Of a DNA stretch of 64,000 nucleotides, positions 1,838-24,645 are shown piece after piece (positions within the stretch are counted from its first letter, which is position 1; each line of letters begins with the position of its first letter). This DNA is from Eutreptiella sp. 'Long Island Sound 2002' (lineage: Eukaryota > Protista > Euglenida), in assembly GCA_964036045.1 (NCBI GenBank), contig OZ038379.1, forward strand, positions 56,420,001-56,484,000. The letters run 5' to 3'. The translations under genes and the position numbers were made by a program. Below the pieces are notes generated by a model. That model was not told the DNA's origin and did no database searches. It saw only the letters and a list, made by a program, of their open reading frames with translations.

Positions 1838-2995
1838 TCACACTGGTCCCATGGGTAGGGATAGCAGAGGCTCCGCCTCCATGACCGTCTTGTTCAAGCC
1901 TCCCACTCCACCACACCACTCCTCATCTTCCTCATCCTCCTCATCCTCGTCATCCTCCTCACCCTCCTCATCCTCCTCATCCGCCTCGTCCTCCTCATCC
2001 TCGTCATCCTCCTCACCCTCCTCGTCCTCCCACACCTCCTCGTCCTCCTCGTCCACCTCCATGTCCTGTGCGCCTTGCACGCCTCCATAGCCATGTCCCG
2101 GTGCAAAGCACAACACGTGGAACGCCTTTCCACAACCGGTACATTCATAACCAGTTCTTCCCCTCTTGCAAAAGTGGCACACACGCCTCCGTTGTGTCGC
2201 CACCGGCACGTGCACCTTTTGTCGGAGGGGGTGGGCAAAGTACCGCCGCCGCAACACTTGCCATTGCCACTCCCACATACTAGTGGTCTCCTTGCAAAGT
2301 CCCAATTGCCGGCAAGTTGCGAACGCATTCACAACCGCGTACCGGAGCACGAACGCACGCACCGCGTGGGCCCATGTCATCTGGCGGCCAACCTGCCTCA
2401 TCTGCAGGGCCATCTGGTTCACAGCATCGACACTGCGCGACGGTGTGCGGTACGCCGCCACCACGGGGTGCACTTCGCGCCCGCTTCGCCGGTGAGGTGG
2501 TCCCTTTGGGGCAAACCACACATTTGTCAGCGTCGGCACAACGCGGGGGGGTTTTTGCCCGACCTTCGGATTATTTAATTAATTGTACACGCACAAACTG
2601 TACTTCGAATCCGCAACAGTGCACACCGCCGATTGCCCCTCCTGCACCTGCTCCCCGGCCCATGTCACGCCGTACGTAGACCTCTTCGTCATCATGAGGA
2701 ATGCCCGCTTGTTGGCGGCCAATTCCTTTGCGAGGCCGTGGGACCCGAAAAAGGAGTCAGCACATAGCACCGTCCCCTCGGGTAGCACTGATGCCCACAA
2801 CTTCATGATGTTTTTGGCATCAAAGTTTCCTGCCGCGGTGCCGTAGCGGCGTAGCGTGCCCCGTGCACCGATGTGCAAGTACATGTCCACCACATAGCCC
2901 CATGTTGCGTCCATACCGCGGCTCATACTGATACCCATACCGGTGCGGCCACGCCTCCCAGCTTGTCTGCACAACATGTAGAGCGCGCAAAACAT
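1838..2995 (-). pseudogene. piggyBac-family transposase, 5'-truncated, one in-frame stop, C-terminal Cys-rich domain and acidic tail
   Basis: DATWGYVVDMYLHIG, TVLCADSFFGS (DNxFTS-type Asp), AYRTPSRSVDAVNQM (YN..GGVD..DQ-type) and CHFC-x8-CTGC-x4-H-x2-C (cysteine-rich domain). ORFs 2579-2995 and 1838-2539 are in the same frame, separated by a TAA at 2579-2581. Confidence 0.85.
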
Positions 2996-4590
2996 TTGAT
3001 ACCTCCGTGAATTATTTAACCCCCTCCGGGAATGATTTGATACCCCCCTGAATCCTTTACCCCCCTCCGTGAATTACTTGATACCTCCGTGAGTTATTTA
3101 ACCCCCTCCGCGAATTATTTGATACCTCCGTGAATTGTTTACCCCCCTCCGCGAATTATTTCATTCCACCGTGAATTGTTAACCCCAATCCGTGAATGGT
3201 TTGATACCTCTGTGAATTGTTTACCCCCCTCCGTGAATTATTTGATACCTCCGTGAATTATTTGATACCTCCGTGAATTGTTAGCCCCCCTCCGTGAATT
3301 ATTTCATCCCTCCGTGAATTATTTAACCCCCTCCGTGAATTCTGTGATACCTCCGTGAATCGTTTATCCTACTCCGTGAATTATTTCTCACCTCCGTGAA
3401 TTATTTGATACCTCCGTGAATTGTTTACCCCCCTCCGGGAATTATTTGATACCTCCGTGAATGATTTAAACCCCTCCGCCAATTATTTGATGCCTCCGTG
3501 AATTGTTTACCCCCCTCCGCGAATTGTTTCATCCCTCCGTGAATTATTTACCCCCCTCCGTGAATTATTTGATACCTCCGCGAATTGTTTACCCCCCTCC
3601 ATGAATTCTTTGATACCTCCGTGAATTGTTTACCCCCCTCGTGAATGATTTGATACCTCTGTGAATTGTTTACCCCCCTCCGTGAATTATTTCATTCCAC
3701 CATGAATTGTTAACCCCCATCCGTGAATTATTTGATACCTCCGTGAATTATTTAACCCCCTCCGTGAATTATTTGATACCTCCGTAAATTGTTTACCCCC
3801 CTCCGTGAATTATTTGATACCTCCGTGAATTGTTTACCCCCCTCCGCGAATTATTTGATACCTCCGTGAATTGTTTACCCCCCTCCGCGTATTTTTTCAT
3901 CCCTCCGTGAATTGTTAACCCCCCTCCGTGAATTATTTGATACCTCCGTGAATTATTTAACCCCCTCCGCGAATTATTTGATACCTCCGTGAATTGTTTA
4001 CCCCCCTTCGTGAATTTTTTGATACCTCCGTGAATTGTTTACCCCCCTCCGTGAATTATTTCATACCTCCGTGAATTGTTTACCCCCCTCCGCGTATTTT
4101 TTCATCCCTCCGTGAATTGTTAACCCCCCTCCGTGAATTATTTGATACCTCCGTGAATTATTTAACCCCCTCCGTGAATTATTTGATACCTCCGTAAATT
4201 GTTTACCCCCCCCCCGTGAATTATTTGATACCTCCGTGAATTGTTTACCCCCCTCCGCGAACTATTTGATACCTCCTTGAATTGTTTACCCCCCTCCGCG
4301 TATTTTTTCATCCCTCCGTGAATTGTTAACCCCCCTCCGTGAATTATTTGATACCTCCGTGAATTATTTAACCCCCTCCGCGAATTATTTGATACCTCCG
4401 TGAATTGTTTACCCCGCTTCGTGAATTATTTGATACCTCCGTGAATTGTTTACCCCCCTCCGTGAATTATTTCATACCTCCGTGAACTGTTTACCCCCCT
4501 CCGCGAATTCTTTCACACCTCCGCGAATTGTTTATCCCCCTCCGCGAATTGTTTCACATCTCTGTGAATTATTTAACCCCCTCCGTTAAT
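2996..4590. repeat. Satellite: ~41-bp dimer of CCGTGAATT-ATTTGATACCT and CCGTGAATT-GTTTACCCCCCT, with ~205/410-bp higher-order periodicity
   Basis: Direct reading. Variant CCGCGTATTTTTTCAT at 3885, 4090 and 4296; variant CCGTAAATT at 3782 and 4192. Confidence 0.95.
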
Positions 4591-4736
4591 TCTGTGGTGC
4601 CCCATGCCCCGTCTTCCCACAAAATTTGTTACCACCTTTCTGCCACCAACCTCACCAGTGAGGTGAAGAAGTTATCTGTGGTCTTCACTTTCGCGTCTAC
4701 GACCCAGACACCTCTACCTCTGCTCTCCTGGCCTCT

Positions 4737-5150
4737 AAGCTGCAGGAGTTGCCCCTTGGTCTCTCGCCGCCTCGCCTCGACCAGGGGCATCCCTCATCCC
4801 CCAACCCACCTACTGCTGGTCCTTGAGCCGCAGAAGTTGGCCCTTGGTCCCTGGCCGCAGCGCCTCGACCGCGGTCGTCATCCATCCCCCAACCCAGCCG
4901 CTGCACGCCACTGAGCCGCAGAAGTTTGCCCTTGGTCCATGGCCGGCGCTCCTCAACCTCGGTGGTCGTCCATCCCCCGGCCCACCCACTGCAGGCCGCC
5001 GAGCCCCAGGAGTTTGCCCTCGGTCGCTGGCCGCCGCACCTCGACGAGGGTCGTCATACATCCTCCAACCCACCTACTGCTAGCCCTTGAGGCGCAGAAG
5101 TTTGCCCTTGGTCCCTGGCCGCCGCGCCTCGACCTGGGTCTTCGTTCATC
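4737..5150 (+). repeat. ~5 copies of an 88-bp tandem unit (GAGCCGCAGAAGTTTGCCCTTGGTCCCTGGCCG...)
   Basis: Unit starts at about 4737, 4825, 4913, 5001 and 5089. Confidence 0.85.
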
Positions 5151-5345
5151 TCGCAAACCGCGCACTGGCATCGAGTGGGCCCGCGCAAGAACCCAAGGAG
5201 GAAGCAGCCTACCACTTCGAGTATCGGGGTCCAGGTCCGGATTGCCCTCCCGAGTTGTGGTCACCAACAGATACCCACCGACCTGCACCTTGTGGGCCAC
5301 GCAAGAGGCCACAACCTTAAACAGTTGTGAGGCAGGCTCCTACAG

Positions 5346-6059
5346 ATGGCCCGGCATCCTGAATGGCCCCCGAGGGACACCATGGAAGCCGCTCAGATGA
5401 AAATGGGCTTCCGTCTAGCCCTGGTCAAGGCAGGGTGGCATGCCCCACCAGAACAAGAGGCCATCTTTTACAGGAAGTTGGCATGGCAAATGGCAACATG
5501 TGCCCTGGATGTCATCCATACCCATGGACTTGCAGCAGTGTTCCGCCTGATGTACAGCCAAGAGGGCAGTCCAAAATGCACACGGGAGGACGGAGGTGCT
5601 GTTGTGGAATACCGTACGGTAGCCTCAAACTTGTGGGAGCGGATAACACAGTATGAGCAGGACTGTGGGAAAGTGGGTGGTCAACGAGGGGCCATTTCTG
5701 GACACCCCATCAGCGTTTGCAAACTCGCTTGGATGGAGGCTTGGAATGACATTAATTGTGTAATAATAATTGTGTACGCTCTGCCAGTTGTGGACTCATG
5801 GCCATTCTGGTCCAGGAGAGGGGAGACCAAGTACCCCACACCCGCTGTAGAGAAGATGTATGTGGCTGGGGTACGGAGACAACGCTTGGGCCGAATGCAG
5901 TACTTTTGGCCACAGGCAGCAAGTGCAGCACGGCCATTCACAAGTGATTTGGTGGCACCTGCGAGCCGCCGGAACTCACTGTTGCCGGCCGATGGGAAGG
6001 GTTCGAAAGCACAGGGGACCCCAGGATCCGGGGCTGGTCGACAGAGAGTGTCGTTGTGA
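5346..6059 (+). CDS. Uncharacterised 237-aa ORF, probably part of the plus-strand transposon block
   Basis: Open frame with protein-like composition; no recognised motif. Confidence 0.3.
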   Translation: MARHPEWPPRDTMEAAQMKMGFRLALVKAGWHAPPEQEAIFYRKLAWQMATCALDVIHTHGLAAVFRLMYSQEGSPKCTREDGGAVVEYRTVASNLWERITQYEQDCGKVGGQRGAISGHPISVCKLAWMEAWNDINCVIIIVYALPVVDSWPFWSRRGETKYPTPAVEKMYVAGVRRQRLGRMQYFWPQAASAARPFTSDLVAPASRRNSLLPADGKGSKAQGTPGSGAGRQRVSL

Positions 6060-7092
6060 CCTGGTGGCACAGGTCCGACTAGACAGGGGACACCTAGATC
6101 TGGGGGTAGTCGACGGAGCTCGCTGTTGCCAAAAAGCTCAAGTTCTACTTGCAGTCCCGGACCTCAACCCAGCGTCCCACCCTATCCAGCTCCTGTGACG
6201 GTGCGGCTGACTAGACAGCAACAGTTCGACCAAGCATTGATGCAAACGTGCCATGGCCATGCCTAGTGTGACCGCAGTGCGATCCAAGACTTGGGGGAGC
6301 AACAGCGGGAGCCTCTGTCAGAGGACAGCATGGTGGCTGCCTATACGGTGGGACGCCACTTTGCAGAGTCCATGCGGATTCCCATGCAAGAAAGTAGCGA
6401 TGTGATACTGAGGTGCACCGCTTTCAGCCCTGAGATACCCCGCAGCCACCTGGGATACCTCCCTGCCGGTGTCCGTGTGGTGAACAATGCATGGACAGAT
6501 GATGCTGGGGAGGAGGCCATGGAACTTCTATTGGAAGCAATGGCTGAAGCTGGGGTGCAACCCCCCCCCCCCAGATCCCATGACACCTGACCAGGATCCC
6601 CCTAGAGGTGATCCAAGCCAGTCCGACGTCCCCGCCTGTGCGCTGCGACTCGGATCCCAAGATACATATGGCGGTGTCCCTTGTGACAAAGGTACACCCA
6701 TGATGCAGGTGCTGTGCACCAGGATGATCAGATGCAGGGTGGGGACACAAAGTAGGCCATAGGCACAGCTGGCATCCCCGGTGATGCACAGCAATGCCCC
6801 CCCCACCCCACCCCCACCCCCCCGCGCCTTACCTCCTGCTGTCCAGGATCCCCGCAGAGGTGATCCAAGTGAGTCCGACGTCCCAGCCTCTGCGCTGCGA
6901 TGTGCACCCCAGGCTGCACCCGGTGTTGCAGATGGTGTGCATGCTGATGATGAGATCTACGGCCGAGACGTAATGGAAAACACACGACCGGGTGTTGCAC
7001 AAGAATGCCTAACCCCACACTCCGGTTGTGGGGTTGAGTCACTCTCTGATCAGAGATCGCTTGTGCCCGTAGCACAGCGCCCACCATAGGTT

Positions 7093-7890
7093 TTGTTAAG
7101 TGGGCAAGATAGTGAAATGTCATCCCCCAATATGCATAGCAATTTGGGGACTGCATGCAGTGTCATGGCACCTAGTCAGTCCAGCACATATGGCTCACAG
7201 CTGAGCAACAGCCCCCCCTCAGGCAAGAAAGCAATGCCTAGGGATCCCAACCCCATGCCTGCTGCAAAGCGTGTGCGGTTAGGGGTGGACCAGGCCGCAG
7301 CAATTGACATTGACCATCCTGACCAGAAGGTTAAGGTGGATAGAATTAAGGCTACGGCCGGTAGGGATCCGCCTACCATCCGGCAACTGAAGTTACGGTT
7401 GGCGCCTGATGAGTATATCGCTGGTGCATGTTTCTTTTATGCAGCTGCCCTGAGCCTCCATGCGCTCCGCAGTCAAACCCCCTCAACTGGTGTGGACCTG
7501 CGAGTGCAGGCAACCATAATGTACGGGGATTGGTGTGGCATAGAGGTGAAAGAGAGTGCTCTAAGTGTCTGTAGGGCCCTGGAAGTGGATAAATGGGACG
7601 AGAGGCCCTTGGGGGGAATGCCAGACCATTATTCACCTCTGGCCACCCACATTGATGGGAAGGTTGTGTTGTTGCGTACAAACACACCAAAATAATCGAT
7701 TCAAGGTTTGGCCCCGACACTGCTGTGACATCTGCTGCAGTTTGGAGTCCGGCTATGGCAGAAGCCAAAGTGTACCATACAATCGAGGAGATGGAGAAAG
7801 CCTGTGAACAAGCATGTGTGATCGTCATTGGTGAGGCCGAACGTGATGGGCGCCGGCGGGGTGGACATTACCGAGGCGCCATCTATGACC
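7093..7890 (+). pseudogene. OTU-like cysteine protease domain (frameshifted near 7690)
   Basis: DEYIAGACFFYAAALSL...DLR resembles the OTU (D)GNCLFRA..S..L...LR catalytic-Cys box. GGHYRGA near 7860-7880 resembles the HY catalytic-His box. Confidence 0.55.
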
Positions 7891-7979
7891 GCTCGTTGCA
7901 GGTAGCACCTTTGTGTGTCTTGCATGGCATAATGGGGACACTAGTGAACACAAGAGAGACGTCACAGCACTTCTGCTTG

Positions 7980-8470
7980 CCAAGGTTGCAGTTCGGTGTC
8001 GGTGGGAGCAAAGGCCATACACCGAAAGGGGATTGTCGCTGGTCACGGCTTGTATAGGGGACACAGGAGCATGGCGCCCTTGTGATGATGGTGAACCACA
8101 TTGCAAGGGAGTTGGTGCCAGAGTGGTTCACGTGGACTACAATACACCTGTCGTGCAATGAGACGGCAGCTCCCCATTAGCATCGTTTTGATAGTACCCC
8201 ATGGTCAGCAGTGTTCTCCGCAGGGCAGCACGTTGGTGGTGAGATCTAAGTGGAAGAGGGAGGCGTCGGCAGTGGACCGCGTGGCAGAACAGGGAGAAGG
8301 CAGCGCGTAGATGGCATTAACCGTGCGGGCCACAGGTACCGTGTCGATAGGCAACCTGTAGTGGTCCGCACTGGCGCATGGCATGCTACTTGCCCATGGG
8401 AAGGGGACAGGCGATTGGTGGTGCTTTACGGCCGCGGAGAATGGCAGAGTTTGCCTCCATCGCACCGCAA
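7980..8470 (+). pseudogene. 2OG-Fe(II) dioxygenase domain resembling the TET/JBP type
   Basis: The 7725-8057 frame read through stops gives FTWTTIHLSCNETAAPH*H...SAGQHVGGEI*VEE...WHATCPWEGDRRLVVLY. This fits N..H-x-(D) / G.F.GG.L / H.T.P..G.R..V.Y; the HxD site is damaged. Confidence 0.65.
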
Positions 8471-10281
8471 GTTCTTGCACCAACATGCCTTCCGCCTACC
8501 TGCAGGTTAGTGGCGGTCCGCAAGGTGGAGCACGGCAACGGCCGTGTGGCATGGCGAACCCCCCACGTCACAATTGGTGTTGGCTTGGTACAACGTTCCA
8601 ATGCCTCGTGCTGGCCTCTTGTGGACAGGAGGCCTCCGATGATGAGTGCCCAGATGATGTGGCGATGTGGGCTACACTTGGGGGTGACATTGTGGCAAGT
8701 ACGACAGGTGCTGTGTACCGTCCAAATGCCATTGCACGCCTCTTGGCGGATGAGGGGCAGCCAATTGTTACTGTGTGCCAGTGTAGTGGTCGGTGTCAAT
8801 GTGTCAGGAGGGCCCCCAAGTTTGAGTGGATGCAGCAGTGCGAGATGGCTGAGTGTTGGAAGCACATGGTACCGAAGCTCGTTCGTGCCGGTGTTCGTTC
8901 TCTATCTGGCTGCTTGTCTCATGAGCAATGGTGGCAGCGGTGCCCAGTATGTGACAAGAAAGTCCTCCAAGCTGGAGGTGAGTTGGCAATGGCTGCCCAA
9001 GTGTTGCATGTTACTAACCAAGGCCAAAGCGTGCAGGTGCGAATGAGGGGGGGAATGAGCGGCCGTTCGTTGGGCCGCCCTTCAAACCCCCCCCCCCATG
9101 TGGCTGTGGGGGGGATCTCCAAGAGGCCATTGTACTATCGTCACTGGTGTTCAACAAGTCGGCTCCACTCCATGTCCACAATCAACAGCTTCATAGCTTG
9201 ACTGTGGATCATGAGTTTGTGGATGTCAACGGGTACCATGGGTCCCTCCGGGCCATGGTGCTACACATTGGAGCACCTAGGGAGGAAGGGCACTTAATAT
9301 TGTTGTTCACATTTTAGTTCGCGATGAGTGGTGGTTGTGTGATTATGCGTCGGTGACCAGGGGACGCCCTCCAGCCAATTCGCGAAAGGTGACATTCCTA
9401 TTGTATGAGTGTACTCCCACAGAGATGGTGGGTCTGTCACAAGGCGGTTCACAAAGGGGTGCTTGCAATCGTGGAGCACATGATGCCCCCTCTCAGTCTG
9501 CAGCAACAACGGTCGACAGGCATGTCCACAGCATGGCGAGCAGCACCTCGTTGCCAGCCATGGCGCTGGCAACCGGTGACCCACAGTCTACCAACCACAT
9601 TGGGGAAGCACAACCCTCCCCCTCGCAGTCTGCAGCACCAACTGTCGCCAGGCATGCCCCGGGCGTGCCAAGTAACACCCAGTTGGCAGCCATGGCGCTG
9701 CCAACGGTCAAGGGTGACCCCGCATATACCACACATGTGGGGGATGCGCAGCCCACCATCGAGTTTATTGAAGCTGTGGCCAAGCATGTACAAAAACAAA
9801 GTGTACGGGTGCAACAGCATTTGCAAGTCCGTGTGCAAGCCCACCAGGTTCATCTGCGGGCACGTCATGAGAAGGAGTGGGGTGAGAGGCATGCAAGTCA
9901 GGGCATGTCACACCGGTCTGTAGCCGAGTCCATAGAACAGGATGGAGCCCGATTTGCTGCATTGGCAGCAACGGGGAGCAATGCTTTTTCTGTGATGATG
10001 GGGGCAGCCCCCAAGCAACACAGAGCAGGGCCAAAGACATTGCAAGCCTTTGTGGATGCGCATTGGCAGTTGCAGTTCACTGTTGAGGGGGGTGTAATGT
10101 GCATATGTTGTGCATGGGCTGCTCAAACGGATTGTTCTGGGGTGAAGCGGCCACCGAAGGCGGCTACACCCTTGGTGAATGGAACATATGGCATGGGCAT
10201 GCGTATGATGATCGCTGCACCAAAGGGATGGCGTAAAGATGTCCTGGAGGGTCACCTTGGTGTGTCACGTGGCACAACCAG

Positions 10282-11069
10282 CAGGGGAGGTGGAAAATTG
10301 GCTTGCGCCCGGGGGGGGGTCACGGCTGTCGCCTGAAGGAGGGGGGGGGGGGTTTGGGAAATGGACACCTGTGACAGGACCTATGTATGGTCCTCATTGT
10401 CAGCCTTTTTATTTTACTACGCTATATACCCTCTAATTTTTGAACATGGGCAGATTCTGACTTGGCTTAGTTGGTAATAGGCCTAGGCTGCAATCCCAAA
10501 GGTCCTGGGTTCAAACCCAGCTTCATGCAATGTTTTTCCCTTCGCTTTTTTGGTTTTTTTTATGTCTTCATGTTTGCATGTTTGCATGTGCATGCCCCCC
10601 ACAAGACAGCTTTCTACAGGTCCCCCCATCAGGGGGGACCCTTTCAGTCAGTCACAGGCACACATACCCCTTAAACCCCCCCCCCCCCTGCTCTCGACCC
10701 CTTCCCCGAAGCAACCAGCCCCTGACAAGGAAACAAACAAAATTCAGTTAAACACACAGGGCCAATGACAACACCACTTTGCAAAAAAAAATTTCTTTTT
10801 TGGTGAACCTTCCTTGACATCCGCATCATACTAATTTGCCAACGGGAGGCCATGGTGGGGCGTTGCATCCCCCCCCCCCCCGTGCTATGGGATGCAACCG
10901 GAATAGACCGGACATAAATACCACCAACGTTGGGGGTAGGGGGGGGACTGGGGGGCTGTGTATACCGGTTGTCATTGCCCCGTCACGGCGGGCCAGAAAG
11001 GGGGGGGGGGTTTGGGAAATGGACATCCGTGACCCCCCGTGGGCGCAAGCCAATTTTCCCCCACCCCAG
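10282..11069. mobile_element. ~790-bp TIR-bounded non-autonomous insertion in the hAT ORF
   Basis: GGAAAATTGGCTTGCGCCC (10292-10310) is inverted as GGGCGCAAGCCAATTTTCC (11041-11059), with weaker pairing outward. CCAGC is directly repeated at 10278-10282 and 11066-11070; precise removal restores the frame. Confidence 0.85.
10456..10528 (+). tRNA. Degenerate tRNA-Cys(GCA)-like sequence (pseudo-tRNA or SINE head)
   Basis: A box TGGCTTAGTTGG, anticodon loop CTGCAAT, T-arm CTGGG-TTCAAAC-CCAG (B box GGTTCAAACCC). Acceptor and anticodon stems pair poorly. Confidence 0.6.
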
Positions 11070-14000
11070 CCGCACGAAAATTGATAATCCTGGCCGCCAC
11101 CACTAGGCCGCCGAGGAGAGTTTCCGTGTGCATTGTGCGGAACGTTTTCGGGCACTGTTCCCCAGTGCATCTGCGTGTGCGGTCAATGTGGCAGAGAAGA
11201 GCACTATGTTCATTGGGGGTGAGGGCATGGACCTTGGTGTACCTATCACCGACGCGGTGGCAACCATTTTGTCACGCTTGGTGGAGGTATACATTGGCCT
11301 CCGCATGTGCACATCCATCCGTGCAATCAGTGAACGCATTCTTGTGCATTGTGCGTTGACCTCCGAACCGGGCCATCATGCCTCTCGACGATGGATAGTT
11401 GAGATGGCCATGGTCGCAATGCATGGTGCCATGCAAGATGGTGTGTCAGAGACCCTGCAAAGGGCATTGTTCATTGCCTTGTTGTTGGATGGATCTGACC
11501 GGCAACGGCATCGCATCAATGAGTATGCCATCATGCTCCTCTTCCTAGGCACTAGGCAAGCGGGAATGTGTGAGGTGTTCCTTGGTGTGGTGGATGTGGT
11601 GCGAGGGGAGGCACAAGAGGTGACGGCACAGGTGGAGGCAGTGCTGCTGTCATGGATGCCTGACCGTGCCTGGTGGGCTCAGAAGGTCGTGGTTTTTGCT
11701 CTGGATGGCGCCTCTAACCTTGGTGTGCGTGGTGCCACTGCACGACAAGCTGTTGATGTGTCGGCAATGGAGTACAATACGTTTGCCATGCTTGTGAAGT
11801 GGTTGTCCTTGCTAGCCCCCCCGGGTGAGCCATGCCATGTGGTCCAGCGCAAGCTAGGCCTTGCCTTTGAGGCTGCCGGCCAAATGCATGGTGACTACCC
11901 GGCAGCTGTGCGTCGGCAACGTGCATTGTACAACGGTGCGCGCCAGTGGAAGGACCTCGGGAGGTGTGTCCAAAAGCACAGCAGACCCGATACACTTAGC
12001 GGGTTGCGTTTGATCCCTGCCAGTCACCGTATCCGGTGGTCCGAGGCAAATGCCCGTCGCAACAAGGTGTTCTTGGCCAATGTGCCATGGGTGGCGAGGC
12101 ATTTGGATTCCAAAATGCACCTCACCACCAAGGAGGAGGATGTGTGGGAGGATTGCCACGATGCAGGTTTGCTGTCACGGGCAGTGGTATATGGAGACAT
12201 ACTACACGGCACACGCAGCTTCAACAATGTTGCACAGTTGCATGCACCAACAGGTGCCCACTTGACCAAGGCACCCGAAATGTTACAGGCACGGGTGGAA
12301 ACGGTGGCGAGGGAGGAGGGGCCAGGGTGGACTCAAGTCAAAGTGCAAATTGTGACGGGTGCATGGCATGGCGTTGAATTGGTCCGGTTTGATACCGATG
12401 ACCAGAGCCGCACAACCAGCCCCCCTTTTCTAGCCACAAAGGCACATGCAGCCACAGACACATTGCTTGCTGGCATCAGGGAGGGACAGGGGACCATTGA
12501 TCCCTAGGGTGTTCTTGAGTGTGCTGTGTTGCTTGACCATGGCCGTTGCCTCGCTCTACCTGCGGCTGATCGAGCCACATTTGGAGCGGATCTGCTGAAG
12601 CAGTTCATGGGCACACACCACGGTGAACAGGCAGCTGCGCATGTTAGTGCTGCTCGTGCATTGGAAGATTGGGAATCCTTCAAGGAGCATGTCGTTCAAA
12701 CCTTTGCCAAGACCCCCATGTCCCGGATGTGGGAGGCCTTGACGCCGGAGCGGGAGCATCTCCAATGGGTGAATGGTTGGCGTGTTCTGTCACTGCTGCG
12801 GACATATTGCCCTGCTGAGGCTGCTGTTGAGCGTGCCATTTCGTTGCGTGGGAGGTTCACAGGCAGAATGCATGATATGGAGGACACAGATGTCCTTAGC
12901 ATGTGCATGGCTCTGCATTGTAATTTGCCTTTGCGGCAATGGGTGAAGGGGCAGGGTGTCGAGGTAGCCCGCAAGCTGGCAGCCAATGCACGCTTTGATT
13001 TGCGTACCCGGCATGGGGTTTCGCAGCGCATCCATCCACGTACATCAGTGGAAGCGGCCACGCCGCAGTGCCTGGAGGGGGAGGCTACAGTGGCAGACGA
13101 TGGTGACATTTTGCCATCTTTTGGGGGTCGGAGGTGCCACTGGCTTGTCAAGGCGCCACAGGCAAACGACCAAGAAGCCCCGTCTGAGGACACTGACGAC
13201 ACTGTGGTCGAACAAGATGGTAGTCCTGCTCAGCATCGTGGCAACCATGATTTCTTCACTTTCCGAAGGGGCATTGACTGTGCAGTGTGCAGGCAGTCTT
13301 TGCGCATCTGGTGCAACACATGTCTGATTTGCCACACATGCTTTGCCAAAGATCCAAGACCGTGTGGTGAGGCAGTGGTGCAGGTTGTGGATGATGCAGC
13401 CGAGGCTGCTGAAAATAACAGTGAAGAGGAAGCAGTGGCACCACGGAAGTCCGACCCAAAGCGTGCCTTGGCCCGTGCAAAGGCCAATCTGGTATGTACC
13501 GCAAAGGCAGGCACATTGCGTGACTGGACACGTGCTCGCATGTGTGATTGCTTGGGTGCCATGGGTGTGAAGGTGACATATAACATGAACCGGCAACAAG
13601 CCCGAGACATTGCTATGCAACATGCATTGCCTTTGCTAGCCCAAATGGACTCTGATTGGGCCCCCCCAACGGATGGTGTTACCCGTTCTGCTGCACCACC
13701 CAGCAGCTCACAACCATGTTCCCAAGTGCCGGTGGATGACATGGACGGACTCATTGATGAATGAGACGGTTGGGGTTGCAGTGATATTGTGCTTTTGCAT
13801 GCTTGCTGTGCCAATCCCCATGGTACCCATGTTCTCCTTCTCTGCATGTCCATTCATACATTAGCAACCATAAGCATGAATTGTATTTTTCATTTTCTAT
13901 CCGATGTTGTGCTCTAACATTTTCCCATTTCCCTTGGTTTTCCCTTTTCCCACATTGTCCCCAACCCCCCATTTTCCAAGAGGTTTTGGTTTTTTTTTGG

Positions 14001-14195
14001 GGGGGGGGGGGCACTTGTGCCACTTTTTCCCCAGAATTGCCTTTCCACATTTTCAAACCCTATATTTTCCCCAACCCAACCCATCATTTTCTTGAACTGA
14101 AGGGTTGTGTGTTTTGGGGGGGGGGGGGCTTGTATTAGACTTTTCCTAGTGTTCCCTTCTCCACATTTTCCATTCCAACCGATTTGCCCTAACCC

Positions 14196-14380
14196 ACCAT
14201 TTTCCTGAGGTGAAGTTCCTGTGTGTCTGTGGGGGGTGGGGTACTGCACTTTTATCACCATTTTCCTGTGAAGTTGCTGTGTGTCTTGCGGGGGGGGGGG
14301 GGGTCTGCACTATTATCACCATTTTCCTGAACTCAAGTTCCTGTGTGTGTGGGGGGGGGGGTGCACTTTTATCAGACTTT
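14196..14380. repeat. Three ~62-bp degenerate tandem units (ACCATTTTCCTG..AAGTT.CTGTGTGT..poly-G..TGCACT.TTATC)
   Basis: Direct reading. Confidence 0.7.
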
Positions 14381-14518
14381 TACTTGGATGTGCTCTAATG
14401 TGGGTCCGCAACACGACATACCAAATCAGACTTCAGACTTCAGACTTTATACCCATAGCTGCCACCCCCACCCTGGACATCAAGCAGCCCGGGGACCGAC
14501 GGCTGCATTGGTTGCCTA

Positions 14519-15721
14519 TTGCGGTTTCATGGTACGTCGAGGCATGAGGCCTCGTACGTCCATTGCACGGTTGGTGGCACCGCGAGCCCCAACCATCTAT
14601 CTAGTTGGTGGCTACTGGGGGGCAGTGAAAAGTGGGAGACCTTCTACGCGGCCTCCCAAGAAATTGATTTTGATGACGAGTTGCGCAAGGCGGCAACCGT
14701 AAGTTTTAAAGATGCGGAAGGGAACGATAGGCAGTCCCTTTTTTTTCTTTGTGCAGATGGGAAAGCACAGGTGCTCATGGCGGGCTGCCAAAACTGGAAG
14801 GCAGAATCCCCTGCTGCCACCGTGTGTTGGGTCTGCACGCGCAACCGTGCTGTTTGCCTTGCTACCTTTGGCACAGCAAGTGTGATAGACGGCAACTGCG
14901 AAGGGGCTGTTGCCATAGGTGCTATATATAGGACCATTACGAGTGATAGGCGAGTGCCTGATTATGGCCTCCATGGGGTCCTTCGTGTCTTGTTGTGTGG
15001 CATCAACATGACACGGGACCTAGTTGTACAATTGACTGGGAAGGCACCGGCCACTGTGGCACGCACCATGCTGCAACCGGTTCTAGATGAGGCACGGCTT
15101 GCAGCACGAACTTGCACCCGTGCCTCATTAAACAATGACAAGGCAAACAGCAAGGGGAAGGTGAGGATGGAGTGTGCTGCTGCCATCCATTTCATGCAGA
15201 GGAGGGGTTGGGAGAAGATAATAGATGCTTGCCTACAGCATCCTAGTGTGTGGCAGCATCAAGTAGAAGGAAAAAGTTGGGAGTCGGTGTGCAAAACGTG
15301 GTGGGATAATTTTGCAAGCACGTGTGTATACACGTGGCGTTCCGCATGGTTCTCCGAGGCCCACTTGGGGCGGCTCGGGAACCATAGCATAGCCGTGGGC
15401 ACCGCCCACAATGACCTCCAGTGGGGCAAACTTCTGTGGACGCATCTTTGGACCGACCACATGTATTATTTTGCAAAGAAGTGGAGAATCTTGTCAAAGT
15501 TCTCCTGCTTTGCCATGGGGGGAAGTCACCGAAGGCCGCAGCGCATGTTGCGCAACAGCGGGGGCCTAAGCCTCCTCCGGGGGAGACTAGGGGTGCAAGT
15601 GGTTGTGGACAACCGCACCATGGATGACAGCCTTTGGTCGCATGGGTGGGATGCGACCAAAAGGGCACCAAAAGGGCAAGGGCCCATGAGTGTACAAACG
15701 TACGCAAGCCCTACAAGATAA
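14519..15721 (+). pseudogene. RAG1/Transib-like DDE transposase core (copy b); predicted catalytic Glu reads Gly
   Basis: WWLLGGSEKWETF; FFLCADGKAQVLMAG...CWVC (cf. RAG1 GYD708EKLVREVEG...CTLC); VPDYGLHGVLR (cf. IDALHC); WTHLWTDH; FSCFAMGGSH (E962 position = G). Confidence 0.7.
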
Positions 15722-22734: not shown

Positions 22735-24645
22735 CATCCCCCCCCCCGGTCCTGCAACCTGGCCCAGCCCTTGCGCCGCGGGTCCATGCCCCCCGCACTC
22801 CTGCCCGCTTCCAACCTACCCAAACCCTCCAGCAACGAGAGGGCCAAATTGGGGTTCGTCCCCAACATCCGGCTCAACTTGGTGAGCCCCACGAGGCCCG
22901 TCTGCCCTCCACCATCGCGCCACTCCACGCGCACCCCGCGGCGGTCGCCTCCACACGTCTGCACGCTGACAACCTGAAGAGACAGACAAAATGCAGGAGC
23001 GTTCTAGCGGCGTTCTAGGCAACTCTTCTAGCGGCGTTCTAGCGACGTTCTAGCGGCGGCGGTACGGCGGTGGCTAGATCAGCGCTAGAACGGTTCGCTA
23101 GATCAACGCTAGAACGCAATCGACATACCGTGCCTTGGCGGTCCAGGGCGGGGGAGATGGCCCCCAGTGCCTTGGCGAAGGTGTCCGCGGGCTTGGGGGG
23201 GTGCGGCTGCGGCGGGCCGCCAGCACGGGCTGCGGCGGGTTTGGGCTTGGGATTGGGCCGGGTGGCGATGCCGTGCACCACCCCGGCATACACCCCCCGG
23301 ATCGCCGCCTCGGCGTTGAAACCCCCGAAGTCCAGCAGCGCCGACCGGGTCGGCGTCCAGACCCATGCCTTCCCACCCACTCAAACCTCCCCAAGCCCAG
23401 CCCCTGCCAGCAGTGGGCGACGAACTGCTAGTGGGTGGCCCCCCCCTTTCTCCGCTCGGGGGTGAAGATGTTCGTTTGCGCCAAATCAAACATCTTCACC
23501 CCCCTTTCGGGGGGGGGGGGGGGCACCTCCCCCCACCGCTTATTCCCCTGCCCCGGCAACTCTTGTTGCCACCCTCACGACCCCTCGACCACCCCCTGGC
23601 GCAGGGGCTTGTCCAGGTGGACAACCCCCCCCCCCCCGTCCACCCATACCCACCGCCCCGCCCCCAACAGCCGCTGGTGCACCCGCACCAACAAAAACCG
23701 GAGAGTCCATACCGGACTCTCCTGGGCGACGAGGCAGGGGGGTGTCCAGGTTTGGGGGTTGGGGGCCAGCCAGGACTGCCGGGTCCAATGGCAGGTCCTG
23801 GAGGGCCCCCGCAGCCCTCGACCCCATCAACCCTCTGAGCTAGTCGCTCGTCCCGCCCCCCGCCGGCGCCGCCTCCACCACCTTGGTCTCCTCCTCCTCA
23901 TCCTTCACGCTCGCCTCCTCCTCCATGTCGCCATGCTCGCCCACCTCCACCACCTCATCCAACTCCTACCCTTCATCCTCGCTACCACCGCCGCCAACTG
24001 CCTCTCGTACTGCCTCACAGCCCGATCCAACCCCTGGACCGCCGCCGCCTTCTCGGCCACCTTCGCCTTCGCTTTGGGAAGGTTGGCCTCCGCCCACTCC
24101 ACCCTTTCCTCCTCCGCTCCCTCCTCCACGGGGCTCCGCAATTTTACCTCCCAGGCCGAGACTTTCGTCTCAGCCCGAGTCTTGGCCGCCCTGGAGGCGG
24201 CGCGGGAATCCAAGAACCCTTTGAGCTCTCCCCGCGCCACCTCCACCTCTGCCGGTTCCTCCAACGCTGCCGCCCCCTTCCGGGCTACCAATGGGGGAGG
24301 GGGTGGCGACGGTGGACGTTTGGCTTGGGGTTGGGGCTTGGGCTTGGGCTCGGGCTTGGCGAGGGGGGCTTGGGGATGCGGGGCCTGCTCGGCCTTCGGC
24401 TCCTCCGCCGCACGCCTGTCAGCCTCCTGGATTTGCGCAATGAGCGCCTGGGTCGCTGCGTTCTGTAGCACAGGAGCGTTCTAACGGCGTTCTAGGCAAC
24501 CCTTCTAGCGGCGTTCTAGCGACAGTCTAGCGGCCGATTGTGCTGCCTAGATCAAGACTAGAACGATTCCCTAGATCACCGCTAGAACGCACAGCACGAT
24601 ACATACCTGCCTCACCAGCTCGTCCAACTGCTCCCGCGTAGCCAT
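21878..24645 (-). pseudogene. Spliced, low-complexity (Pro/Lys/acidic) accessory gene; exons 24645-24607, 24462-23129 (with frameshifts) and 22973 onward
   Basis: ATG GCT ACG...CAG|GTATGT...CTACAG|AAC gives MATREQLDELVRQ-NAATQALIAQ in frame. ACG|GTATGT...TCTTCAG|GTT gives DRQGT-VVSVQT in frame. Both introns are phase 0. Confidence 0.7.

Follow-up and report, generated by a model that had tools for sequence, protein, structure and literature searches.

A decayed hAT-type transposon of a euglenid alga with a predicted deubiquitinase–transposase fusion and a TET-like dioxygenase domain

A stretch of 64,000 nucleotides from the genome of the euglenid alga Eutreptiella sp. 'Long Island Sound 2002' (GCA_964036045.1, contig OZ038379.1, positions 56,420,001 to 56,484,000 of the forward strand; hereafter the window, whose own coordinates are used throughout) very probably harbours a dead, 5'-truncated copy, at ~2994-14461, of a large autonomous DNA transposon family of the hAT type, in which three open reading frames (ORFs), ORF-A, ORF-B and ORF-C, follow each other in this order. 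ORF-C is predicted to be a deubiquitinase of the ubiquitin-specific protease (USP) family fused N-terminally to a hAT transposase with an Asp-Asp-Glu (DDE) core. The C-terminal domain of ORF-B is, according to its structural model, a 2-oxoglutarate (2OG)-Fe(II) dioxygenase of TET-like fold, and the domain upstream of it has features suggestive of an OTU cysteine protease. An earlier interpretation of the same DNA, made from its letters and open frames (the sequence-only reading), had proposed a co-oriented hAT-like block at 7093-13764 with an OTU protease and a TET/JBP-like dioxygenase. All motifs of the window do lie on the plus strand, but the block was drawn too narrowly: the transposon extends beyond it on both sides and holds a nested miniature inverted-repeat transposable element (MITE).

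Results

Copies, termini and gene order of the element

The search of the 2.28-Gb assembly, with its 3960 first-look candidates, yielded at least 25 scored copies that are 88-94% identical to the 7093-13764 block, a number far above chance, and the sequence common to more than 20 copies is collinear. Similarity to the other copies starts at position 2994, where a 41-bp satellite begins, and ends exactly at 14461; the 3' end point, ...TATACCCATAGCTG, is the same in seven copies, beyond which the flanks are unrelated. No matching 5' terminal inverted repeat (TIR) was found upstream in the window, whose copy misses this TIR together with ~3 kb of 5' sequence. The complete 5' end is seen in copies on chromosome 1 (C1) and chromosome 9 (C9), both of which begin with the 14-bp TIR CAGCTATGGGTATA, the reverse complement of the 3' end, located 2-3 kb upstream of the satellite. 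Both full copies are flanked by 8-bp target site duplications (TSDs), CCCCACAT in C1 and AGGCGACA in C9, and in both a single TIR pair encloses all ORFs, the arrangement that the sequence-only reading had proposed to look for in intact copies. Because TIRs and 8-bp TSDs enclose all genes in two full copies, the cargo is integral to the element and the element is most probably of the hAT type. A Helitron, a LINE or another element without TIRs had been considered, as the window copy opens within a satellite and no 5' TIR precedes it; the 5' TIRs and TSDs of the C1 and C9 copies rule this out.

The insertion site of the C1 copy could also be recognized. This copy was inserted in another repeat, an uninterrupted paralogue of which lies in the window itself; there the 8-mer occurs just once, at ~24319-24322. 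The window segment 22362-25225 belongs to this other repeat family and serves as an empty site, since the full hAT copy of chromosome 1 was inserted in its paralogue there.

The C1 copy measures 15,773 bp and consists of a TIR, ~3.1 kb devoid of long ORFs, 3.4 kb of satellite, the genes and the second TIR. More generally, the intact layout comprises a TIR, ~2-3 kb of non-coding sequence, a 41-bp satellite array of variable length (from 3.4 to >7 kb, inside the TIRs of other copies), ORF-A, ORF-B, ORF-C, subterminal repeats and a TIR. The window copy retains the following features of this layout, with the MITE added:

2994..4591, plus strand: internal satellite array; each 41-bp unit built from a pair of ~20-bp sub-repeats (...CCTCCGTGAATT); 39 copies according to Tandem Repeats Finder (TRF); 5' side cut
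4730..5140, plus strand: 88-bp tandem repeat, 4.7 units (TRF), between the satellite and ORF-A, within the region common to other copies
5331..6587, plus strand: ORF-A remnant, 78.5% identical (tblastn) to the intact ORF-A L015:1852-3084 (~411 residues when intact); stops at 6057 and 6264
6487..7976, plus strand: ORF-B remnant, first part, a Pro-rich linker followed by the OTU-like domain (~7320-7976); stops at 6760 and 7087, frameshift near 7692
7420-7437 and 7860-7877, plus strand: OTU-like motifs from sequence reading, Cys-box-like AGACFF and His-box-like GGHYRG, respectively
7977..8507, plus strand: ORF-B remnant, second part, predicted 2OG-Fe(II) dioxygenase (double-stranded beta-helix); stops at 8055, 8178 and 8247
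8172-8192, 8379-8399 and 8406-8429, plus strand: dioxygenase motifs PH(stop)HRFD (metal motif), WHATCPW (distal His) and DRRLVVLY (2OG-binding Arg)
8362..10284, plus strand: ORF-C remnant, N-terminal half, predicted USP/UCH domain with Cys box NWCW at 8572-8583, aligned by tblastn to the intact 1534-residue ORF-C L020:4751-9352:-
10285..11066, no strand assigned: nested MITE-like insertion of ~780 bp with terminal inverted repeats of ~38-50 bp, splitting ORF-C
11068..13761, plus strand: ORF-C remnant, C-terminal half, predicted hAT-like DDE transposase with a Cys-rich C-terminal tail; stops at 11104 and 12505
11479-11499, 11704-11724, 11833-11856 and 12826-12843, plus strand: hAT-like motifs from sequence reading, the D motifs LLLDGSD and DGASNLG, the CxxH motif CHVVQRKL and the E/dimerisation motif VERAIS
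14195..14374, plus strand: 61-bp subterminal tandem repeat, 3 units (TRF), inside the 3' end, in the region common to other copies up to 14461
14448..14461, plus strand: 3' TIR TATACCCATAGCTG, the exact 3' end of the element, preceded by TCAGAC(T) subterminal repeats

Other copies retain open frames of 411 residues for ORF-A, 582-670 residues for ORF-B and 1534 residues (two copies) for ORF-C, and the window copy can be aligned by tblastn to all three intact ORFs. The window copy itself is dead. It has nine in-frame stops (6057, 6264, 6760, 7087, 8055, 8178, 8247, 11104 and 12505) and three frameshifts (near 7692, 9195 and 9299), and its ORF-C is interrupted by the MITE. The latter, with inverted arms at 10281-10318 and 11033-11070 and several G or C homopolymer runs of 10-13 nt, is private to this copy: query positions 3192 and 3975, which border it, lie side by side in every other copy.

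ORF-A, ORF-B and ORF-C recur in this order in a relative found on contig L031 of the ENA assembly ERZ25074135. Upstream of them this relative carries a 52-bp satellite of its own, and its 3' end, ...ACACATAGCTG, is related to that of the window's family. Amino-acid identity between the two families is 51% for ORF-A, 52% for ORF-B and 65% for ORF-C. Copies 98% identical to the L031 relative exist in the Eutreptiella genome, which indicates that L031 represents a younger family, carried by the same organism or by one very close to it. Between the families dN/dS amounts to 0.18 in ORF-C and 0.135 in the dioxygenase part of ORF-B (ORF-C gives 0.34 when compared with an 86%-identical relative); dS is saturated in ORF-A and in the OTU-like part, with dN values of 0.42-0.46. 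As judged from these comparisons, the gene order is kept under purifying selection in the second family.

In both families the three ORFs occupy different frames. Relative to ORF-B, the frame of ORF-C is +1, and ORF-C opens ~140 nt before the ORF-B stop, the overlap corresponding to 8362-8507 in the window and to L031:8657-8793. ORF-C may be translated from a start of its own, by reinitiation or frameshifting, or from a separate trans-spliced mRNA. This consistent arrangement argues against a simple polyprotein, and the idea of the sequence-only reading that all domains may stem from a single ancestral polyprotein thus finds no support.

An SF1 helicase gene (AAA_11/AAA_12, product of 1269 residues) is located at L031:1-2675, just upstream of the satellite and in the same orientation. 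We considered it as a candidate part of the element and rejected it, as neither the window nor the 5' region of either TSD-bounded copy contains a helicase; this verdict covers the window's family only, the 5' TIR of the L031 relative not lying within the 10 kb examined.

ORF-C: a predicted deubiquitinase fused to a hAT-like transposase

In the N-terminal half of intact ORF-C the presumed catalytic residues of a USP occur in order, C73 in NWCWLGTTLQCL, H310 in QGHF and D325/326, with the cysteines of a zinc ribbon (C139/C145...C194/C197) in between. The Pfam UCH model (PF00443, peptidase C19) matches intact ORF-C at 25.8 bits, above its curated cut-off of 23.9 (E 9.8e-6); the match spans the half of the model that holds the His box. 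When residues 40-380 were searched against PDB sequences, all 10 matches were to USP14, USP15 or USP12, each of them weak (E 0.1-1.2), and both the Cys box and the His box could be aligned to USP14. In the window copy the His box is disrupted by the frameshifts near 9195 and 9299; a linker rich in repeats and a small cluster of cysteines come after it. The sequence-only reading had reported a Cys-rich region here. The cysteines are there, but the domain that they belong to, a predicted USP/UCH domain with a zinc ribbon, had gone unnamed.

The C-terminal half of intact ORF-C features D774 (LLLDGSD), D846 (DGASNLG), C889-H890 and E1221 (AVERAIS), which are invariant across eight ORF-C relatives. 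The order of the acidic residues and their spacing, 72 and 375 residues, are comparable to those of the Hermes and Ac hAT transposases. The protein-language-model neighbours of residues 640-1290 are hAT-clan clusters, namely FAM200-ZBED5_RNase-like, DUF4371 and Dimer_Tnp_hAT (scores 0.94-0.88), and nine of the ten best clusters belong to one clan. The TIR starts with CAGCT, which fits the YARN part of the hAT consensus YARNG, not its final G, and TCAGAC subterminal repeats are present. On the basis of its TIRs, 8-bp TSDs, motif spacing and protein-language-model neighbours, the element most probably belongs to the hAT superfamily. In this respect the sequence-only reading is supported, and the empty site agrees with it.

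ORF-B: a predicted dioxygenase and an OTU-like domain

The motifs WHATCPW and DRRLVVLY of the window (8379-8429) are in the same frame as the His-box-like GGHYRG, and together with the predicted fold they bear out the 2OG-Fe(II) oxygenase that the sequence-only reading had placed in this frame. The stop at 8178, within the metal motif, is a former Gln codon. In both element families, as well as in a sub-group of remote homologues, the proximal metal motif reads His-Gln-His-x-x-Asp; the other homologues have HxD at this position. The distal His (WHAT) and the R-x5-Y segment (RRLVVLY) are canonical and conserved. An exhaustive HMMER search with residues 221-670 of ORF-B identified 166 proteins at E <=0.001. 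The close matches are fragments of the family itself, whereas the remote ones (25-35% identity) cover the C-terminal 150 residues alone and display the classic pattern WT..N.....HxD..N...GGELW...H.T.PW.G.R....Y.

An AlphaFold2 model based on a 60-sequence alignment has a predicted local distance difference test score (pLDDT) >90 for model residues 215-390. In a Foldseek search of the PDB with this model, the TET enzymes CcTet (E 1.6e-5), CMD1 and NgTET1 (to 1e-4) ranked ahead of AlkB, ALKBH5 and others (from 5.6e-4), and the best VIA structure alignment, with the lowest root-mean-square deviation (2.7 Å over 154 residues), was to NgTET1. The model thus assigns a TET-like fold to the domain; its membership in the TET/JBP family is unproven, this label being drawn from the ranking of folds.

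Some of the remote dioxygenase homologues reside within retroelement-like proteins (rve, RVT_2). One of them, P0094 (L043/L044, NCBI GCA_905221615.1), combines a weak RVT_1 match, a weak UCH match and the dioxygenase, and another, P0103, has RVT_2 (E 2e-18) and the dioxygenase. The dioxygenase domain recurs in other classes of mobile elements, and its combination with a USP may do so too.

In the upstream part of ORF-B, a D-x6-C motif (DEYVAGACFFYA) at the start of a predicted helix is followed by the segment W-G..GG..HF..LA..G.VVLLR and then, on a strand, by GGH(F/Y)RG. Most relatives conserve these features, with variation at one position of the WG segment, which follows the pattern WG..GG..(H/E)F..LA.

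Traces of cytosine methylation among the copies

We analysed base changes in an alignment of 12 copies (window 5546-12569 and L002-L012), scoring them against the majority base. C>T changes amount to 3.3% at CG and 2.8% at CWG, versus 0.84-0.85% at CCG and CHH, i.e. they are ~3.5-4 times more frequent at CG/CWG, and the observed/expected ratio of CpG is 0.51. Such a footprint is expected if the host methylates the copies at CG and CWG, and it fits silencing by 5-methylcytosine (5mC), suggesting that repeats of this genome are methylated at these sites. The assembly contains full-length genes for paraflagellar-rod proteins (PF05149, E 1e-105), and since this structure is restricted to Euglenozoa, the genome can be taken as euglenozoan. 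The base-J pathway, which modifies thymine, is present in Euglenozoa. Euglenids also encode orthologues of DNMT1 and DNMT5 (PMC12344493). Given the C>T decay at CG/CWG and these methyltransferases, 5mC is a plausible substrate of the dioxygenase, with thymine as the alternative.

Discussion

The first question to settle is whether the block represents one element at all, and whether this element is a hAT. A chance nest of separate elements, with a protease/dioxygenase carrier lying beside or inside an unrelated hAT, might come to mind since the window copy does hold one foreign insertion, the MITE at 10285-11066, and adjoins a piggyBac-like transposase fragment on its 5' side. However, one pair of TIRs brackets the full set of ORFs in each of the two TSD-bounded copies, more than 20 copies are collinear, and a family at 51-65% amino-acid identity keeps both the gene order and the ORF-B/ORF-C overlap. 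The separate nested elements that the sequence-only reading had allowed for are therefore not what the other copies contain, and we regard a chance nest as exceedingly improbable. The hAT assignment of this single element has more to contend with. Running the Pfam models for Tet_JBP, OTU and hAT domains, as the sequence-only reading had recommended, gave no match on the window or on the intact ORFs, and no 2OG domain was recognized by Pfam in either set. A profile of ORF-C relatives found no match among PDB sequences, which would include Hermes, and comparison of the ORF-C core with the Pfam-verified hATs of the genome by hmmsearch and hhalign was non-significant, aligning the C-terminal ER-type motif alone. 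Furthermore, 8-bp TSDs are also known from P, Zisupton and Novosib elements, and none of the copies that we read has ORF-A, ORF-B and ORF-C all intact. These points weigh against an autonomous hAT family, which we consider very probable. A genome search with DUF4371 gave no match at all, its controls being likewise unmatched. NCBIfam had no match to the intact ORFs, phmmer searches of ORF-A, ORF-B and ORF-C against PDB sequences returned no significant match, and ORF-A in particular is without a match in Pfam, NCBIfam or PDB sequences.

The two domains of ORF-B call for a similar assessment. Instead of a TET/JBP-type enzyme acting on DNA bases, the dioxygenase might be an AlkB-like enzyme of nucleic-acid repair or demethylation, or a protein (prolyl/lysyl) hydroxylase, which would then work with the two deubiquitinase-like domains on histones or on the transposase. 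The domain is joined to a protease-like and not to a DNA-binding domain, and two remote homologues weakly match the prolyl-hydroxylase-type model 2OG-FeII_Oxy_3 (E 4e-4), compared with weak Tet_JBP matches in three of the 51 remote homologues (E 0.0017). Several further results tell against the TET reading: the Tet_JBP (PF12851) and 2OG models of Pfam do not match intact ORF-B, a profile of the dioxygenase family has no match among PDB sequences, and the lead of TET enzymes over AlkB-type and prolyl-hydroxylase folds is just ~2 Z units. The replacement of the canonical HxD by HxH likewise means that both activity and substrate of the enzyme are predicted at most. In a genome-wide search PF12851 does pick three other loci, none of which belongs to this transposon family. 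On the other hand, TET enzymes precede AlkB and the other folds in the Foldseek ranking, the structure alignment with the lowest deviation is that with NgTET1, and TET/JBP cargo is established in fungal DNA transposons, hATs included (PMC12730594). Taken together, this makes a dioxygenase of another kind unlikely. The TET/JBP-like label of the sequence-only reading can be retained in so far as the nearest solved folds are TET enzymes, but not as a Pfam-level assignment, and the metal motif differs from that implied by the label. As to the upstream domain, it could be a lineage-specific helical/beta module, for example one by which the dioxygenase binds its substrate or DNA, with a merely fortuitous likeness to OTU boxes. 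Consistent with this, and at odds with an OTU protease, the Pfam OTU model matches neither intact ORF-B nor any of 34 family members at E up to 5, the AlphaFold2 model of this part is poor (pLDDT 56), and the candidate catalytic His is a Tyr in the L031 copy. Yet the order and spacing of Asp-x6-Cys, the WG segment and GGH(F/Y)RG mirror those of OTU proteases and are conserved in most relatives, the best 16 rows of a second look by VIA are all OTU proteases, and in a Foldseek-independent search the whole domain (model residues 11-192) is covered by OTUs only. Moreover, the saturation of dS against the second family at a dN of 0.42 identifies this part as conserved coding sequence. We therefore find an unrelated module somewhat doubtful and keep the OTU protease as a suggestive assignment: the Cys and His boxes of the sequence-only reading are present, but the domain is a candidate and no more.

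Enzymes that undo silencing marks are known in transposons mainly from fungi (TET/JBP) and plants (ULP1). Among the closest parallels to the euglenid element are the hAT7 elements of rust fungi (Puccinia), which carry TET/JBP genes upstream of the transposase and co-oriented with it (Kojima 2025, PMC12730594), so that the statement of the sequence-only reading that no hAT with TET/JBP cargo had been described is outdated. Like these elements and the KDZ transposons of Agaricomycetes, the euglenid family is a cut-and-paste element with a TET-like 2OG gene upstream of the transposase and in the same orientation, and the transposon-associated CcTet of Coprinopsis is the top Foldseek match of its dioxygenase. 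It differs from hAT7 in its host, a euglenid instead of a fungus, in its TSD of 8 bp rather than 7, in its internal satellite array and in the fusion of the transposase to a predicted USP. Its dioxygenase is also unlike that of hAT7, being unseen by Pfam Tet_JBP, having HxH in place of HxD and being joined to an OTU-like domain. The report on hAT7 (PMC12730594) mentions no ubiquitin-related cargo or term. With respect to the solved TET-family enzymes NgTET1 of Naegleria and CMD1 of Chlamydomonas, the predicted dioxygenase has ~11-16% identity with no match at the level of sequence, its metal motif is HxHxxD, and its gene is transposon-borne.

Protease cargo has precedents of its own. Plant MULE/CACTA elements carry ULP1 proteases. 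Helentrons carry an OTU cysteine protease (PMC4067079). In all of these, as here, a papain-like (de)ubiquitinase or ubiquitin-like protein (UBL) protease is kept as cargo, but the carriers are rolling-circle or Mutator/CACTA elements, whereas in the euglenid family a single ORF unites the predicted USP (peptidase C19) with the hAT transposase, and the dioxygenase is joined to a further domain, the OTU-like one. The transposase part itself resembles hATs of the Buster/FAM200/ZBED5 type in the D..D..CxxH..ER-type order and spacing of its motifs, the 8-bp TSD and a TIR starting with CAG; it is set apart by a divergence too great for Pfam models, by its N-terminal USP fusion and by its Cys-rich C-terminal tail. 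Our literature search turned up neither a description of a USP-transposase fusion nor one of hAT elements in euglenids, and no paper reporting the combination of a USP-fused transposase with a TET-like dioxygenase, each part being known from other transposons.

How might such an element work? The transposase part would excise and insert the element by the usual hAT cut-and-paste mechanism, while the cargo would have chromatin as its target, at the element or close to it. The dioxygenase may oxidize a DNA base, either 5mC or thymine, the latter as in the base-J pathway of Euglenozoa, and the USP, perhaps along with the OTU-like domain, may deubiquitinate histones or the transposase itself. Acting together, they could delay silencing or stabilize the transposase. 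We infer an anti-silencing function of the cargo, as the sequence-only reading had done. A bolder version, quite unlikely in our estimate, is that the HxH TET-like dioxygenase, the USP and the OTU-like domain form a transposon counter-silencing module that erases 5mC at CG/CWG, or writes or erases hydroxymethyl-uracil/base J, and strips repressive ubiquitin, and that the pairing of dioxygenase and USP has been recruited independently by retroelements of other protists, as in P0094 (RVT_1, UCH and dioxygenase). If this were true, dioxygenase plus USP would be a recurrent toolkit of mobile elements rather than a one-off capture.

The remaining observations concern the surroundings of the window copy and the genome at large. 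The piggyBac-like fragment, at 1838-2995 of the minus strand, matches positions 152-349 of the Pfam model DDE_Tnp_1_7 (E 3e-7); it has a PHD-like zinc finger at its C terminus and also an acidic tail. Its break at 2995 coincides exactly with the start of the hAT satellite, and one deletion or rearrangement thus appears to have truncated both elements. On the other side, an ORF of 400 residues without a Pfam match (14519-15721, plus strand) starts 58 bp past the 3' end of the transposon. The only strong Tet_JBP locus of the genome (G000:C2138:19243-19665, 74.7 bits) lies in an open frame of 534 residues on a small unplaced contig, and the two weak ones are on C21 and C5.

Overall, our results delineate a hAT family in a euglenid, i.e. 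in a lineage equipped with DNMTs as well as with the base-J pathway. If its cargo acts on DNA bases or ubiquitinated chromatin, transposon counter-defence would extend to a new eukaryotic supergroup, and a new, small class of TET-like enzymes would become available for testing. If it does not, the family would still be a well-delimited new group of hAT elements, useful for annotating a very repeat-rich genome.

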